A stretch of 64,000 nt of DNA, taken from the sequence record NC_048048.2; one strand, written 5' to 3'. The position numbers were made by a program, and so were the translations under genes. A model generated the notes under the pieces. It did not search any database and was not told the DNA's origin. It worked only from the letters and a program-made list of their open reading frames with translations. How positions within the stretch are numbered: position 1 is the stretch's first letter; every line of letters starts with the position of its first letter. Shown piece after piece: positions 15,840 through 27,237 of the stretch.

Positions 15840-15914
15840 GCGGCTATAGCTCAGAGGTAGAGCGCCTGCTTGCCATGCAGGAGGTCGCGGGTTCGATCCC
15901 CGCTAGCCGCTCCA
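15840..15914 (+). tRNA. tRNA-Gly: tRNA-Gly(GCC)
   Basis: GCGGCTA/TAGCCGC acceptor, CCTGC-TTGCCAT-GCAGG, TTCGA, U73-CCA. Confidence 0.95.
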
Positions 15915-15936
15915 TTCTTCTTTCCCGTGCAGACGG

Positions 15937-16012
<76 letters not shown>

Positions 16013-17452: not shown

Positions 17453-17893
17453 ATGTCGTCAATGATATTTCACGCTTTCGCTGATGACCTGACCCAGGGC
17501 AGGTTTGATCCGGCAAACTGCCGTTTCGGGATGCTCTTGGTGTCCAAGGGATACAACCCGGACCGACGCCAGCATCGCACGCTCCAGGACATCACCCATG
17601 AAATTTCAGGCGATGGCTACGTGCAGGGCGGGCAGGAGATGCAGATCGTCCCTGGACGGGAACTTCGTTTCGTACCGACCAAATGGGAGAAGGCGACCAT
17701 CGGCGCGCGTGGCGCAGTCGTCTACCGGGCCGGAGAGACTGCCGAGGAAAGCGGGCTGGTAGGCTACCTCGACTTCGGCGAAAGGGTCTCTGTCAAGAAG
17801 GCGAACCTGACCGTCTCGATCAGAAACCCCATCAGGATGCCAGGGGTCTATTGGGGCTCTAAACCTTCCCCGGCTGGACAACGGTCAGCCTAG
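17453..17893 (+). CDS. 146-aa paralog of 4176..4592
   Basis: FGMLLVSKGYNP...HEISGDGYVQGG and TIGARGAVVY align by eye with FKVMLVTSAYTP...NEVTGTGYTAGG and TITARAAVIY. Confidence 0.75.
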   Translation: MSSMIFHAFADDLTQGRFDPANCRFGMLLVSKGYNPDRRQHRTLQDITHEISGDGYVQGGQEMQIVPGRELRFVPTKWEKATIGARGAVVYRAGETAEESGLVGYLDFGERVSVKKANLTVSIRNPIRMPGVYWGSKPSPAGQRSA

Positions 17894-17904: not shown

Positions 17905-17945
17905 GTGTCACCGATCTTGACAAGGTCTTCCAGATGTGAGATACG
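17905..17945 (+). promoter_or_regulatory. Promoter of the Glu/Asp tRNA unit
   Basis: GTGTC-N7-TTGACA (17917-17922); the -10 element is weak. Confidence 0.5.
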
Positions 17946-17952
17946 GCGCTTT

Positions 17953-18018
17953 ATGACCTTCTCGACCTTCCTTTTCCGAGAGATCGGCTCCGCGAGCCGA
18001 GATACCACCGCCTCCTAG
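17953..18018 (+). CDS. Candidate 21-aa leader peptide MTFSTFLFREIGSASRDTTAS
   Basis: ATG close to the predicted transcription start; overlaps alternative hairpins directly upstream of tRNA-Glu and tRNA-Asp. Confidence 0.4.
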   Translation: MTFSTFLFREIGSASRDTTAS

Positions 18019-18046
18019 GCTGGTGGTACGACGGCTCGCGCGATGT

Positions 18047-18123
18047 GGGCCTGTCTTCTAAATGGACTAGGAATCTCGGCTTTCAATCGAGCAATGCGGG
18101 TTCGAGCCCCGTCAGGCCTACCA
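18047..18123 (+). tRNA. tRNA-Glu: tRNA-Glu(TTC)
   Basis: GGGCCTG/CAGGCCT acceptor, CTCGG-CTTTCAA-TCGAG, CCA. Confidence 0.9.
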
Positions 18124-18149
18124 ACAATTTCCGATCGAAAGCCACCCTG

Positions 18150-18225
18150 GGCTCTAGGGTGTGAGGGTTAGCAGCGCCGGCTTGTCAGGCCGGAGGAAGG
18201 GGTTCGAGTCCCCTTAGAGTCGCCA
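18150..18225 (+). tRNA. tRNA-Asp: tRNA-Asp(GTC)
   Basis: GGCTCTA/TAGAGTC acceptor, CCGGC-TTGTCAG-GCCGG, GCCA; atypical D arm. Confidence 0.9.
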
Positions 18226-18229
18226 TTTC

Positions 18230-18580
18230 GCCCGGACGGGCACAACCAATCGAAAGCACCGGGCAAGAGCGCTTAGCGGCCTCCAAGCGCCTGGGTTACG
18301 CTGGAAACGCAGGGGTCGCCGGGTCGTGCGTAACGACAGCCCTGGTCAGTGACCGATGGTGGATAAGAAATTGGTCCCAACCTGCTGTAGGTGGTTGGCG
18401 GCGCCGGGTCCGAGAACCCGGACGTATTTCCCGCTGTGGCGCTAGTAGGATGCGCTAGTGGCCATGCCATCGAGGCTCACCGCATGGGGGCCGGCGGAAG
18501 TAGCTCAGGTCCGCCTAGAGTGAAAACCCACATCATGTCGTCGGCCCCACTGCTCTGCATGCGCCGCCGACGCCCTTTCG
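18230..18580 (+). ncRNA. Candidate structured non-coding RNA of unknown family, co-transcribed with tRNA-Asp
   Basis: No credible ORF. Stems GCGCTT/AAGCGC, CCAACC/GGTTGG, CCGGGT/ACCCGG, GGGGCCG/CGGCCCC; ends at a terminator. Confidence 0.4.
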
Positions 18581-18581
18581 G

Positions 18582-18623
18582 AACCCTCGGTCAGGCCAGC
18601 CCTCACCGAGGGTTTTCCTTTTT
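18582..18623 (+). terminator. Intrinsic terminator
   Basis: AACCCTCGGT/ACCGAGGGTT stem followed by TTCCTTTTT. Confidence 0.7.
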
Positions 18624-18632
18624 ATAGAGGCC

Positions 18633-18690
18633 GTGCATTTTTTATTGCACCGTTTCTTGACACGCCTGATGACCTGTGTCATAGGCTACA
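18633..18690 (+). promoter_or_regulatory. Promoter of the 12-tRNA operon with an upstream inverted repeat
   Basis: GTGCA-N8-TGCAC palindrome (18633-18650), then TTCTTGACA (-35 at 18657-18662). Confidence 0.55.
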
Positions 18691-18738
18691 TCATCAACAG
18701 CCCAGATCGGGCGCATTTTCTCCGCCGGAACAAGGTCC

Positions 18739-18858
18739 ATGACCCGCATCCATACCACGCTGCCGACCGCCAAGCCCGCCTCCACCGGCGCGCTGACGCT
18801 CGCCTCGTGGCCGGCGTCGAGCAAGCCGCTATTGCGGCACTCAGCGGTTCTCGCCTAA
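18739..18858 (+). CDS. 39-aa leader peptide of the 12-tRNA operon (MTRIHTTLPTAKPASTGALTLASWPASSKPLLRHSAVLA)
   Basis: AAGG RBS; 33 of 38 non-start residues are P/T/K/L/H/A/S/W, exactly the amino acids of the 12 downstream tRNAs. Confidence 0.75.
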   Translation: MTRIHTTLPTAKPASTGALTLASWPASSKPLLRHSAVLA

Positions 18859-18970
18859 CAGGCGACCGCTCCGGGTGCCGCTTCTAAGCCGCACCCGATC
18901 TCTCCACGACACCTCCCAACTGTCCAGGCGAACCGGGTGCTCCTGATCTCTCAGGAGATCGCTCCTATTT
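18834..18970 (+). promoter_or_regulatory. Putative transcription attenuator (alternative hairpins) before tRNA-Pro
   Basis: GCGGCACTC 18834-42 pairs with GGGTGCCGC 18873-81. CGGGTGC at 18872-78 and at 18934-40 both pair with GCACCCG 18891-97. Terminal hairpin CTCCTGA-TCTC-TCAGGAG with a weak U tail. Confidence 0.55.
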
Positions 18971-18977
18971 GGTTCAT

Positions 18978-19053
18978 CTTGGCGTAGCGCAGTGGTAGCG
19001 CACTCGGTTTGGGACCGAGGGGTCGTGGGTTCGAATCCTCACCGCCGAGACCA
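18978..19053 (+). tRNA. tRNA-Pro: tRNA-Pro(TGG)
   Basis: CTTGGCG/CGCCGAG acceptor, CTCGG-TTTGGGA-CCGAG, ACCA. Confidence 0.9.
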
Positions 19054-19126
19054 TTTCACCCTCCGCCGGCTTTGACCGGACGATCCGCGTGCGCCTGGGC
19101 GCCGGCGGAGGCGTGTTCTTCGTTGT

Positions 19127-19203
19127 GCCGGTGTAGCTCAGCCCGGTAGAGCGTCTGCCTCGTAAGCAGGGGGTCCCTGGTTCAAATCCAGGTGTCGGCA
19201 CCA
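19127..19203 (+). tRNA. tRNA-Thr: tRNA-Thr(CGT)
   Basis: GCCGGTG/TGTCGGC acceptor (3 G-U pairs), loop CTCGTAA, ACCA. Confidence 0.85.
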
Positions 19204-19257
19204 CAAAGAACACGATCGCAAGATCAAAGAGAAGGAACAGACAAGACACAGACTTTC

Positions 19258-19344
19258 GGGCGAGTAGCCGAGTGGTTAAAGGCACCTGACTCTTAATCAG
19301 GCGTGAGAAATCCTACGTGGGTTCGAATCCCACCTCGCCCTCCA
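19258..19344 (+). tRNA. tRNA-Lys: tRNA with Lys anticodon CTT on a long-variable-arm (type II) body
   Basis: GGGCGAG/CTCGCCC acceptor, CCTGA-CTCTTAA-TCAGG, ~16-nt variable region, U73-CCA. Confidence 0.8.
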
Positions 19345-19424
19345 TTGATACCATGTTCCCGCTCGGGAACATTCTGGCCAGGACAGGGGTCTTGGGATGA
19401 GAATGTTCCCGATCGGGATCACGG

Positions 19425-19511
19425 GCGGGTGTGGCGAAGTTGGTAGCCGCGCGAGTCTCAGGTACTCGTGGTCGAAAGGCCGGGGAGGTTCGAATCCTCT
19501 CACCCGCACCA
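19425..19511 (+). tRNA. tRNA-Leu: tRNA-Leu(CAG)
   Basis: GCGGGTG/CACCCGC acceptor, CGAGT-CTCAGGT-ACTCG, long variable arm, ACCA. Confidence 0.93.
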
Positions 19512-19522
19512 ATCTGAACTGG

Positions 19523-19609
19523 GCCGAGATGGCGGAATGGTAGACGCGCCGGCTTCAAGTCCCGTGTGCCCGCAAGGGCGTCCGAGTTCGACCCTCGGTC
19601 TCGGCACCA
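19523..19609 (+). tRNA. tRNA-Leu: tRNA-Leu(CAA), imperfect anticodon stem
   Basis: GCCGAGA/TCTCGGC acceptor, loop TTCAAGT, long variable arm, ACCA. Confidence 0.85.
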
Positions 19610-19650
19610 ATCAGATTGGCGATGGAAAGCGAAAGTCATGCAAGGACAGT

Positions 19651-19738
19651 GCGGAAGTGGCGTAACGGTAGCCGCGCCAGATTGAGTATCTGGTGATCTG
19701 AAAGGGTCGTGGAGGTTCGAGTCCTCTCTTCCGCACCA
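19651..19738 (+). tRNA. tRNA-Leu: tRNA-Leu(GAG)
   Basis: GCGGAAG/CTTCCGC acceptor, CCAGA-TTGAGTA-TCTGG (U37), ACCA. Confidence 0.9.
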
Positions 19739-19771
19739 AGACAAGGAGAAGAAAAGACAGGTTTGGTTTGT

Positions 19772-19843
19772 GCTGAAATGGCCTAGCGGTTAAGGCGCTG
19801 CATTGTGGATGCAGACACGATGGTTCGAATCCATCTTTCAGTG
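19772..19843 (+). tRNA. tRNA-His: tRNA-His(GTG), no G-1 and no encoded CCA
   Basis: GCTGAAA/TTTCAGT acceptor, CTGCA-TTGTGGA-TGCAG; separated from tRNA-Ala by a single C. Confidence 0.85.
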
Positions 19844-19844
19844 C

Positions 19845-19920
19845 GGGGATATAGCTCAGTTGGTAGAGCAGTTGCTTTGCAAGCATCAGGTCGTCGGTTC
19901 GAGCCCGACTATCTCCACCA
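19845..19920 (+). tRNA. tRNA-Ala: tRNA-Ala(TGC)
   Basis: GGGGATA/TATCTCC acceptor with G3:U70, loop TTTGCAA, ACCA. Confidence 0.95.
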
Positions 19921-19985
19921 GACGAAGGGACCCAGGGCGCGGCGCCGGATCGGCGACCACCTGGGTCCGTGACAACAAGACAACT

Positions 19986-20077
19986 GGAGGGCTGGCAGAG
20001 TCTGGCTGAACGCACCCGTTTCGAACGCGGGCAGGGGTGAAAGTCCCTCGGGGGTTCAAATCCCTCGCCCTCCGCCA
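19986..20077 (+). tRNA. tRNA-Ser: tRNA-Ser(CGA)
   Basis: GGAGGGC/GCCCTCC acceptor, loop TTCGAAC, long variable arm, GCCA. Confidence 0.93.
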
Positions 20078-20095
20078 ACACGAGCCGGCATCTAT

Positions 20096-20187
20096 GGAAG
20101 GATGGCTGAGTCCGGCTGAAAGCGCCCACCTGGAACGTGGGTAGGCCTTCGCGGGCCTCGGGGGTTCAAATCCCTCTCCTTCCGCCA
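20096..20187 (+). tRNA. tRNA-Ser: tRNA-Ser(GGA)
   Basis: GGAAGGA/TCCTTCC acceptor, CCCAC-CTGGAAC-GTGGG, GCCA. Confidence 0.93.
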
Positions 20188-20221
20188 ATACCGAGCCGGC
20201 GCGGATCGCCGGCCGAAGCGA

Positions 20222-20311
20222 GGTGGGTTGACCGAGTGGTAAGGTGCGCGCTTGCTAAGCGCAGGTCAGCCTGGAAGGGCTGCGGGGGTTCGATCCCCTC
20301 ACCCACCGCCA
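20222..20311 (+). tRNA. tRNA-Ser: tRNA-Ser(GCT)
   Basis: GGTGGGT/ACCCACC acceptor, loop TTGCTAA, long variable arm, GCCA. Confidence 0.93.
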
Positions 20312-20326
20312 TCGCTTCGACGATGC

Positions 20327-20402
20327 AGGAGTATAGCTCAACTGGTAGAGCGCTGGTCTCCAAAACCAGAGGTTGGGGGTTCGAGTCCCTCTGCTCCTGC
20401 CA
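20327..20402 (+). tRNA. tRNA-Trp: tRNA-Trp(CCA)
   Basis: AGGAGTA/TGCTCCT acceptor, CTGGT-CTCCAAA-ACCAG, GCCA. Confidence 0.95.
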
Positions 20403-26114: not shown

Positions 26115-26156
26115 GCGACACGTTTCTTGACAGGCCCCTATGGCCTGATGTATAAG
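26115..26156 (+). promoter_or_regulatory. Promoter of the 8-tRNA operon; predicted start lies at the leader ATG (leaderless)
   Basis: GCGAC-N7-TTGACA-18 nt-TATAAG with TG just upstream; ATG 7 nt downstream. Confidence 0.7.
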
Positions 26157-26163
26157 CCACCTC

Positions 26164-26262
26164 ATGAGCAAGACGTATCGTCAATTTGTGCGCCAGATTC
26201 AGTTCGTCCGAGTTAATCGGACGGGCCTTTCGCGCATGGTTGACGGTGGGACCTCGATCTAG
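26164..26262 (+). CDS. 32-aa leader peptide of the 8-tRNA operon (MSKTYRQFVRQIQFVRVNRTGLSRMVDGGTSI)
   Basis: Codons 5-18 are all read by the eight downstream tRNAs; the ORF overlaps attenuator segments 1 and 2. Confidence 0.8.
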   Translation: MSKTYRQFVRQIQFVRVNRTGLSRMVDGGTSI

Positions 26263-26328
26263 GTCCCAGACCCGCTCAAACCCATCCTGCGAAGGCCCGT
26301 CCGATCTCTCGGACGGGCCTTTTCTTTT
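26205..26328 (+). promoter_or_regulatory. Four-segment transcription attenuator
   Basis: Seg1 CGTCCGA 26205-11; seg2 TCGGACGGGCCTTT 26217-30; seg3 AAGGCCCGTCCGA 26292-304; seg4 TCGGACGGGCCTT 26309-21 plus TTCTTTT. Pairings 1:2, 2:3 and 3:4 are all possible and adjacent pairings are mutually exclusive. Confidence 0.8.
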
Positions 26329-26375
26329 GTCCTCAATCCAAGGAGTTTCGCCATGCAAGGCGATGCCTATCGCTC

Positions 26376-26459
26376 GGGCCGGCTGGGCACGAGTGAGCCC
26401 ACGGGCCTGTAAAGCCCACGCGAAAGCTGTGGAGGTGCAAATTCCTCTCCGGCCCACCA
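26376..26459 (+). tRNA. tRNA-Tyr: tRNA-Tyr(GTA), atypical T loop (TGC)
   Basis: GGGCCGG/CCGGCCC acceptor, loop CTGTAAA, variable arm, ACCA. Confidence 0.8.
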
Positions 26460-26490: not shown

Positions 26491-26562
26491 GCTTCAGTAG
26501 CTCAGTGGTAGAGCGCCTCGGTGACATCGAGGAGGTCGTAGGTTCAAGTCCTACCTGAAGCA
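26491..26562 (+). tRNA. tRNA-Val: tRNA-Val(GAC), no encoded CCA
   Basis: GCTTCAG/CTGAAGC acceptor, CCTCG-GTGACAT-CGAGG; one C before tRNA-Ile. Confidence 0.88.
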
Positions 26563-26563
26563 C

Positions 26564-26639
26564 GCTAGGTTAGCTCAGATGGTAGAGCACCCGATCGATA
26601 ATCGGGATGTCGCAGGTTCGAGCCCTGCACCTAGCACCA
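26564..26639 (+). tRNA. tRNA-Ile: tRNA-Ile(GAT)
   Basis: GCTAGGT/ACCTAGC acceptor, CCCGA-TCGATAA-TCGGG (C33), ACCA. Confidence 0.9.
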
Positions 26640-26755
26640 AACACTCTATACGGTTTGGCGTATATTCAAGAAATATACGCAATAGCGTATAATCCAGTAG
26701 ACAAATACGGAATTCCGTATATTCGATGAGGTGAAGAACGAGAGGAACAAGATAC

Positions 26756-26830
26756 GGGCCGGTAGCTCAGTGGTAGAGCGCTGCTGTCACATAGCAGATG
26801 TCGAGTGTTCGAGACACTCCCGGCCCACCA
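26756..26830 (+). tRNA. tRNA-Val: tRNA-Val(CAC)
   Basis: GGGCCGG/CCGGCCC acceptor, CTGCT-GTCACAT-AGCAG, ACCA. Confidence 0.9.
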
Positions 26831-26835
26831 GTTGT

Positions 26836-26909
26836 TGGGGCATGGTGTAATGGTAACACGTCGGACTTTGGTTCCGAAATTCCAGGTTCGAGTCCTGGTG
26901 CCCCAGCCA
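26836..26909 (+). tRNA. tRNA-Gln: tRNA-Gln(TTG)
   Basis: TGGGGCA/TGCCCCA acceptor, TCGGA-CTTTGGT-TCCGA, GCCA. Confidence 0.93.
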
Positions 26910-26967
26910 ACTTACGAAGACAACGAGGACTGATGTGACCAGTCCAGTGGAGAAGAGACAGGTTTGT

Positions 26968-27042
26968 TCCCGAGTAGCTCAGCGGTAGAGCGGCTCGCTG
27001 TTAACGAGAAGGTCGCAGGTTCGAATCCTGCCTCGGGAGCCA
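26968..27042 (+). tRNA. tRNA-Asn: tRNA-Asn(GTT)
   Basis: TCCCGAG/CTCGGGA acceptor, loop CTGTTAA, GCCA. Confidence 0.95.
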
Positions 27043-27056
27043 ATACTTTTCTCCAC

Positions 27057-27135
27057 GCCCGGTTAGCTCAGCGGAATTAAGAGCAGACGCCTACGAAGCG
27101 TAAGGTCGGGGGTTCGAATCCCTCACCGGGTGCCA
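27057..27135 (+). tRNA. tRNA-Arg: tRNA-Arg(ACG)
   Basis: GCCCGGT/ACCGGGT acceptor, loop CTACGAA, GCCA. Confidence 0.92.
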
Positions 27136-27161
27136 TTTCTCTGCAAGGTTGCGTACCTTGC

Positions 27162-27237
27162 GCATGGATAGCTCAGATGGTAGAGCGCCGGCGTGAAGCC
27201 CCGGAGGCCAGTGGTTCGATCCCACTTCCATGCACCA
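27162..27237 (+). tRNA. tRNA-Phe: tRNA-Phe(GAA), atypical anticodon loop
   Basis: GCATGGA/TCCATGC acceptor, CCGG(C)-GTGAAGC-(C)CCGG, ACCA. Confidence 0.85.

Follow-up and report, generated by a model that had tools for sequence, protein, structure and literature searches.

Ribosome-mediated transcription attenuation is best known from the amino-acid biosynthesis operons (trp, his, leu, thr, ilv, pheA; Rfam Trp_leader, His_leader, Leu_leader, Thr_leader), in which a promoter-proximal short ORF carries regulatory codons that report on charged cognate tRNA, and the position of the ribosome selects among mutually exclusive anti-antiterminator, antiterminator and terminator helices such that fast translation gives termination. 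This mode of control operates in Alphaproteobacteria, the host class of the phage considered here, as shown by the trpL attenuator of Sinorhizobium meliloti (PMC6614838), although that system is a single-amino-acid (Trp) sensor of a biosynthetic operon. In E. coli, leader-peptide attenuation of the pheST (pheM leader) type appears to act on a component of the translation machinery, likewise sensing the matching tRNA, but it would control a protein-coding aminoacyl-tRNA synthetase operon of the host through a single amino-acid species. T-box riboswitches also attenuate transcription in response to tRNA status through antiterminator/terminator competition, but they bind uncharged tRNA directly, have no ORF, and control synthetase or amino-acid genes in Firmicutes. 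In tnaC-type Rho-dependent attenuation, a translating or stalled ribosome governs access to C-rich RNA just after the leader stop codon, in that case by sensing free tryptophan inside the ribosome tunnel through a specific peptide. Regulation of tRNA genes, by contrast, is usually discussed at the level of promoters and growth-rate control, and in full-text literature searches we found no description of a tRNA operon that reads out its own product through translation of a leader. The phiCbK genome paper states that Rfam detected no RNA elements other than tRNAs and mentions no attenuation or leader (PMC3556154), and the Lacusarx paper mentions none (PMC5648845).

Here, we examined a 64,000-nucleotide stretch (the window; record coordinate = window + 62000) of Caulobacter phage CcrSC (NC_048048.2), a 317-kb jumbo phage of the genus Bertelyvirus with host C. 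vibrioides CB15. The window holds 23 plus-strand tRNA genes in four clusters, at 15840-16012, 18047-18225, 18978-20402 and 26491-27237. The third of these comprises 12 tRNAs, namely Pro-TGG, Thr-CGT, Lys-CTT, Leu-CAG, Leu-CAA, Leu-GAG, His-GTG, Ala-TGC, Ser-CGA, Ser-GGA, Ser-GCT and Trp-CCA, and is preceded by an ATG ORF of 39 codons plus TAA (18739-18858), annotated in RefSeq as hypothetical protein gp541; this and the elements of its leader region described below lie on the plus strand. An intrinsic terminator of the preceding transcription unit (18598-18624; stem 18598-18614 followed by TTCCTTTTTA) isolates the leader and tRNA cluster as a unit of its own. Between the two lies a promoter-like element (18657-18690), with TTGACA at 18657-62, 12 nt, then TGTG at 18675-78, followed by a -10-like stretch. 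This element is conserved in all Bertelyvirus lineages, the motif TTGACA-N12-TGTG matches exactly only twice in the window, at 17917 (cluster-2 leader) and 18657, and the same layout precedes the leaders of Karma and CcrPW. The 5′ UTR includes an invariant stretch (18720-18738) with a Shine-Dalgarno-like AAGG (18732-35) 3 nt before the ATG, which is weak.

The initial annotation had proposed that this ORF covers all 12 downstream anticodons and is followed by a cascade of alternative helices, and we confirm each of these features. Under strict wobble rules (G34 reads C/U, C34 reads G, U34 reads A/G), the ORF holds at least one cognate codon for each of the 12 anticodons and 22 of its 38 codons are cognate, while its ACC and GGC codons match, as had also been noted, the Thr(GGT) and Gly(GCC) tRNAs of the first cluster. 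In a simulation using the codon usage of the phage, the probability of 12/12 coverage in 38 codons was 1.6e-4 and that of at least 22 cognate codons 1.8e-4, and of 121 ATG ORFs of 30-50 codons in all six frames of the window only this one reached 12/12. Further, 33 of its 38 residues belong to the 8 amino acids served by the cluster, against a background of 0.445 (P = 7.6e-8), whereas D, E, N, Q, F, Y and C are absent. The cognate fraction alone (0.58) is not exceptional, since several spurious short ORFs in this GC-rich sequence reach 0.60-0.67, and we therefore relied on coverage instead; it is the complete coverage that is unusual. Some leader codons have no cognate phage tRNA (GCC x4, CTA, CGG and TCA), and a search for cryptic tRNAs in the gaps of the 12-tRNA cluster found none.

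Comparison with other phage lineages indicates constraint on the leader. The ORF is 98.3% identical to that of phage C1 and 100% to that of CcrBL9. Against C1, the stretch from the stop codon to segment 2 (defined below) is 100% identical, although the 12 tRNA genes are 92%, tRNA-Pro 74% and coding genes 73-86% identical. The only two substitutions in the ORF (CCG to ACG, CTG to CTT) exchange one cluster-cognate codon for another. Phage RB23 carries a 15-nt tandem duplication of segment 1.

The decisive evidence is comparative. Every Caulobacter genus of Dolichocephalovirinae has a short ORF ending 114-125 nt before the first tRNA of its large cluster, and each covers all of that phage’s own anticodons (12/12, 11/11, 10/10, 10/10, 9/9, 12/12 and 10/10). 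When an IMG/VR relative is included together with Shapirovirus, Poindextervirus and Colossusvirus, the in-frame ORFs end 81-125 nt before the first tRNA; in the four genera and the IMG/VR contig they are 37-45 codons long. The DNA is barely alignable and the peptides share an alphabet (A, S, T, L, P, K, H) but little sequence; between Karma and phiCbK, two adjacent codons are swapped while the codon content is kept. Leader codons also follow gains, losses and splits of the tRNA cluster. TGG occurs only in the Bertelyvirus leader, the one genus where tRNA-Trp sits in this cluster, and AAA only where Lys(TTT) is present. In IMG/VR contig L016, the Glu/Asp cluster has gained tRNA-Cys and its leader has gained three Cys codons. 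In contig L017/L019, where the cluster is split, a His-Ala-Ser run has its own leader made almost only of H, A and S codons (25/33 cognate), a Pro-Met-Thr-Lys run follows a leader rich in T, P, K and internal M, and a Leu run follows a leader with four consecutive Leu codons. Exceptions exist, as ACG, AGC and His codons occur in Karma without a called tRNA. In all seven phages tested the true leader-to-cluster assignment ranks first among all possible assignments, and in CcrSC this leader matches its own cluster at 22/38 codons, versus 0/38 and 3/38 against the Glu/Asp and cluster-4 tRNAs.

Non-homologous leaders of the same design were found in unrelated phages. Sphingobium phage Lacusarx, which belongs to a different genus, has an ORF with 13 consecutive cognate codons (residues FGKRDRREGERGF) ending 37 nt before a Lys-Lys-Gly-Asp-Glu-Glu-Gly-Arg-Phe run. 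A second Lacusarx ORF, apart from the Phe at codon 2, is built only from T, Q, L, C, H, Y, W and S codons and ends 34 nt before a Ser-(Tyr-like)-Leu-Leu-Thr-His-Gln-Ser-Cys-Trp run. Salicola phage SCTP-2, which is AT-rich and has a gammaproteobacterial host, has an ORF with nine consecutive codons cognate to its Leu, Pro, Leu, Tyr and Gln tRNAs, followed by an in-ORF copy of the 3′ arm of a canonical terminator placed just before the first tRNA, although one annotated gene does lie between the first and second tRNA there.

An alternative is that the ORF encodes a small protein with a function of its own, or is a chance ORF inside a structured non-coding leader RNA, with the match to the tRNA set a by-product of an Ala/Ser/Thr/Pro/Leu-rich composition. 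In its favor, the Karma-type peptide matches a PHROG family of unknown function (PHROG 12742), spurious GC-rich ORFs often reach a similar cognate fraction, and nucleotide-level conservation continues past the stop codon. However, composition does not explain full 12/12 coverage including rare TTG, TGG, CAY and AAG, the complementary alphabets of the three leaders in one genome, the codon changes that track tRNA content, or the non-homologous leaders in unrelated phages, and the codon swap between Karma and phiCbK likewise argues against it. No Pfam family matched any leader peptide, no PHROG matched the CcrSC leaders, and a protein search with the Karma 45-aa peptide found only close relatives. 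ARAGORN and Rfam found no tmRNA, permuted or otherwise, and no other known non-coding RNA; Rfam gave only chance-level hits, with no leader-family or T-box match at gathering score in the window or at E ≤ 10 over 18560-19000. We regard this explanation as very unlikely.

Structurally, the whole leader folds better than shuffled versions (z = -4.7), and its competing helices share strands. Segment 0 (18834-42, codons 32-35) pairs with 18873-81 of segment 1 (18872-18881) through 9 bp including one G-U; this 0:1 helix encloses hairpin a (18843-18870), which has the stop codon (18856-58) at its loop, to give together a 48-nt hairpin of -32.3 kcal/mol. An analogous hairpin of unrelated sequence has the stop codon as its loop in L016. 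Segment 0 is also competed for by a hairpin inside the ORF (-1:0, 18819-18842; 18819-29 with 18834-42, GAG..GCCGC / GCGGC..CUC). Alternatively, 18872-78 of segment 1 pairs with the core GCACCCG (18891-97) of segment 2 (18888-18897) through 7 bp plus 3 inner pairs (-17.8 kcal/mol), as an anti-antiterminator. Segment 2 can instead pair, as an antiterminator, with segment 3 (18934-40; 7 bp, -19.6 kcal/mol with internal pairs), a second copy of CGGGTGC that overlaps the outer 5′ arm of the final hairpin; the same duplication of segment 1 is seen in L016 and, imperfectly, in CcrPW. The final, terminator-like hairpin (18935-18964) consists of 7 bp CUCCUGA/UCAGGAG plus a 5-bp outer helix with two G-U pairs and a 2-nt bulge, and is the minimum-energy fold of its stretch (-14.9 kcal/mol); its outer helix is kept in C1 through a G-U to G-C change. 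The Bertelyvirus sequences are too alike to give covariation within the genus. Because a MAFFT alignment placed segment 0 of Karma, L016 and CcrSC in different registers, column-based covariation counting was replaced by per-lineage duplex folding with shuffles. The topology 0:1, 1:2 and 2:3 recurs with different sequences in CcrSC, Karma/Rogue, CcrPW/Colossus and L016, with shuffle tests across the four lineages giving p = 0.025, <0.001, 0.083 and 0.184 for 0:1, and p = 0.113, 0.036, <0.001 and 0.015 for 2:3.

Taken as in silico evidence, these findings make a leader-peptide transcription attenuator placed in front of a tRNA operon the most likely explanation, although translation of the ORF, the site and mode of termination, the kinetic order of folding and the physiological signal are inferred, and support the core of the initial interpretation, in which a translated leader samples the codons of the downstream tRNAs and chooses between alternative helices upstream of the first tRNA. 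In the proposed mechanism, a host-type promoter at about 18657-18690 starts a transcript whose first 280 nt are not tRNA. If the ribosome keeps pace with RNA polymerase, it covers segment 0 while segment 1 emerges, segment 1 then pairs with segment 2, the final hairpin forms, and transcription would stop before tRNA-Pro, either intrinsically at the weak U tail or helped by Rho on the C-rich spacer. If decoding of any sampled codon is slow, the ribosome lags, segment 0 captures segment 1 in the 48-nt hairpin, segment 2 stays free to pair with segment 3, the final hairpin is broken, and polymerase would read into the tRNA genes. The net effect would be negative feedback, with tRNA genes transcribed in proportion to the shortage of decoding capacity for exactly those codons. 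Relative to the amino-acid operon leaders, the regulated genes are the tRNAs themselves rather than enzymes, the leader carries a mixed set of up to 12 codon species spread over about 30 codons rather than a run for one amino acid, and the extra 0:1 tier makes the passing ribosome, rather than the stalled one, the masking agent, so a delay at any upstream codon can count. Such a design fits a leader that must sample a dozen codon species. In contrast to tnaC, it is codon content and not a conserved peptide that is kept.

Ribosome-mask and growing-transcript modelling reproduce the proposed switch. On a growing transcript, 0:1 forms with probability about 1 as soon as segment 1 is out unless a ribosome covers segment 0, whereas a ribosome on codons 30-40 gives 1:2 with probability about 1 and leaves the final hairpin free to form. 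The final hairpin itself, however, stays at only about 0.4-0.5 in all states, because other pairings compete with it. Equilibrium folding of the full-length leader was ambiguous, with about 1 kcal/mol between states, and preferred the terminator state both without a ribosome (0.83) and with early stalls (codons 1-9), so that read-through on an early stall would depend on kinetic trapping of the 48-nt hairpin, which is an inference. Nor is it established that all 12 codons are sensed; TTG (the only Leu(CAA) codon, at codon 32), CAC and other codons at positions 30-39 lie where a stall is predicted to favor termination. The Karma homologue behaves the same way, and favors 0:1 even at equilibrium (0.6-0.9) when the ribosome is absent or early.

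How transcription would end is less clear. The hairpin is followed by a weak U tail (18965-18974; C-UAUUUGGUU), as the initial annotation had noted, with 4 U in the first 8 bases (CUAUUUGGUU), and it ranks low in a terminator scan, whereas real terminators nearby are -18.5 to -27.5 kcal/mol with T runs. Rho-dependent termination under the same leader-peptide sensing, with ribosome position and the 1:2 versus 2:3 choice controlling access of Rho and the 18935-18964 hairpin acting as a pause or processing element, is therefore possible, though we consider it unlikely. It is consistent with the C-rich, G-poor spacer downstream of the stop codon (18898-18933; 16 C and 5 G, C/G = 3.2), with a GC skew of -0.3 to -0.4 over 18848-18951, and with the CcrPW/Colossus and L016 homologues, which have the leader and the alternative helices but no intrinsic terminator. 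The spacer is free to vary (78% identity to C1) yet C-rich in every lineage; its 5′ end (18898-18905) can also pair with the 3′ arm of the final hairpin. Against this reading, the stretch is short for a Rho site (about 36 nt unstructured), UAUUU directly after the hairpin is kept in both Bertelyvirus lineages although their flanks differ, and the Shapirovirus and Poindextervirus homologues, as well as the cluster-4 and SCTP-2 leaders, end in canonical intrinsic terminators. In Karma, the depositors annotated a rho-independent terminator between each promoter and each of three tRNA clusters, and the homologue of this leader ends in a canonical terminator of -18.5 kcal/mol followed by a T run; Rogue also has a canonical terminator. 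Even less likely, in our view, is that the leader and its helices control processing or stability of the tRNA precursor, for example RNase P or RNase E access to the 5′ end of tRNA-Pro. In L016, segment 3 and its flank do pair with the first 10 nt of tRNA-Pro itself instead of with a terminator arm, the final hairpin in CcrSC ends only 13 nt before the tRNA, and Colossusvirus lacks a terminator, but most lineages, and the independent Lacusarx, SCTP-2 and cluster-4 leaders, place a terminator-type hairpin with a T run exactly where an attenuator needs it, and no processing signal was identified.

If this reading is right, it extends classical attenuation from amino-acid supply to tRNA supply and explains why depositors found terminators between promoters and tRNA clusters in these phages. 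It may be, and we consider it somewhat more likely than not, that such attenuators are a widespread, unrecognized class of phage regulatory element, in which each tRNA sub-operon carries a short ORF acting as a codon barcode of the tRNAs behind it, and that the examples in Dolichocephalovirinae, Lacusarxvirus and SCTP-2 arose repeatedly. The phage would thereby transcribe its tRNA genes on demand, for instance when host tRNAs are limiting or are being destroyed. Recent work places phage tRNAs in the context of tRNA-targeting defences (PMC10264068, PMC11464382), which makes a demand-driven switch plausible, although the link is our inference; such a switch would bear on whether phage tRNAs serve codon compensation or escape from these defences, because it says when the phage needs them.

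Interestingly, the window contains a sister leader that resembles a textbook attenuator. The ORF at 26164-26262 follows a TTGACA-N17-TATAAG promoter, with its ATG 7 nt after the -10 element, and has 14 consecutive codons cognate to the cluster-4 tRNAs, where the next-best short ORF in the window has 8. Its segment CGGACGGGCCTT copies the 3′ arm of the -27.5 kcal/mol terminator at 26291-26322, a pairing that co-varies between CcrSC and Karma. In the model, a ribosome on codons 1-14 gives the antiterminator (0.9) and a ribosome on codons 16-27 gives the terminator (1.0), in line with classical logic. The cognate run starts with TAT and, as leader codons would be expected to forecast the downstream tRNAs, this led us to an unannotated tRNA-Tyr(GUA)-like gene between the terminator and tRNA-Val.

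A second, much clearer predicted attenuator, at 26127-26330, precedes the 7-tRNA cluster. It has a TTGACA-N17-TATAAG promoter and a near-leaderless ORF (26164-26262) with 14 consecutive codons cognate to the downstream tRNAs, as well as an in-ORF copy (26218-29) of the 3′ arm of a 14-bp terminator (26291-26322). This element is conserved across the subfamily and in Brevundimonas phages. Interestingly, between the terminator of this cluster (cluster 4) and tRNA-Val we identified an unannotated tRNA-Tyr(GUA)-like gene with a long variable arm and an ACCA end (26377-26455 in the window; 6208-6288 in L006, the Karma sequence; 6001-6086 in L018, the phage Lacusarx sequence). It scores below the Rfam threshold in CcrSC (18.4 bits), and 42 bits in Karma, and is 86% identical to an unannotated stretch of phage Lacusarx. 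The phiCbK paper states that no Tyr tRNA exists in these phages.

A third leader, at 17917-18046, precedes tRNA-Glu/Asp. It has a TTGACA-N12-TGTG promoter and a 21-codon ORF (17953-18018) with one GAG and one GAT codon, the stop of which is situated 28 nt before tRNA-Glu. Although the match is weak here, the YERE..D pattern is conserved in other genera, and Cys codons are added where tRNA-Cys joins the cluster, as found in the IMG/VR contig L016. The motif TTGACA-N12-TGTG matches exactly only twice in 64 kb, at 17917 and 18657, the promoters of the cluster-2 and cluster-3 leaders, respectively, and the same layout (TTGACA-N12-TGTGAGAG) precedes the leaders of Karma and CcrPW.

Outside this group, we found non-homologous leader ORFs with runs of codons cognate to the downstream tRNAs, each just upstream of a tRNA run, in Salicola phage SCTP-2 (L020, 6003-6160) and in Lacusarx (L018, 4375-4516 and 5747-5849). 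In SCTP-2, a canonical terminator and an in-ORF antiterminator copy lie just before the first tRNA.

In phage RB23 (L005, about 2950-2980), a natural 15-nt tandem duplication of the 3′ arm of hairpin a, the hairpin with the leader stop codon at its loop, plus the adjoining segment 1 (ACCGCTCCGGGTGCC) sits in the otherwise invariant leader of the 12-tRNA cluster (cluster 3). The 5′ UTRs of the Karma (L006, 3512-3605) and CcrPW (L009, about 1860-1941) homologues of this leader contain further hairpins followed by T-rich runs, upstream of the ORF, while CcrBL9 has a 60-nt hairpin-bearing insertion in the same UTR.

Within the cluster itself, the gene called tRNA-Lys(CTT) (19258-19344) has a class-II body, with a 3-bp D stem, a long variable arm, U73 and a length of 87 nt; it is unclear which amino acid it carries. 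All CbK-like phages have 84-90-nt “Lys” genes, whereas Lacusarx has a normal 76-nt one. A long hairpin of unknown function (19354-19421) lies between tRNA-Lys and tRNA-Leu(CAG), and gave weak microRNA-precursor-like hits on both strands. Finally, a 146-codon plus-strand ORF (17453-17893) sits in a 690-nt stretch that RefSeq leaves unannotated, where CcrBL9 has only about 140 nt.
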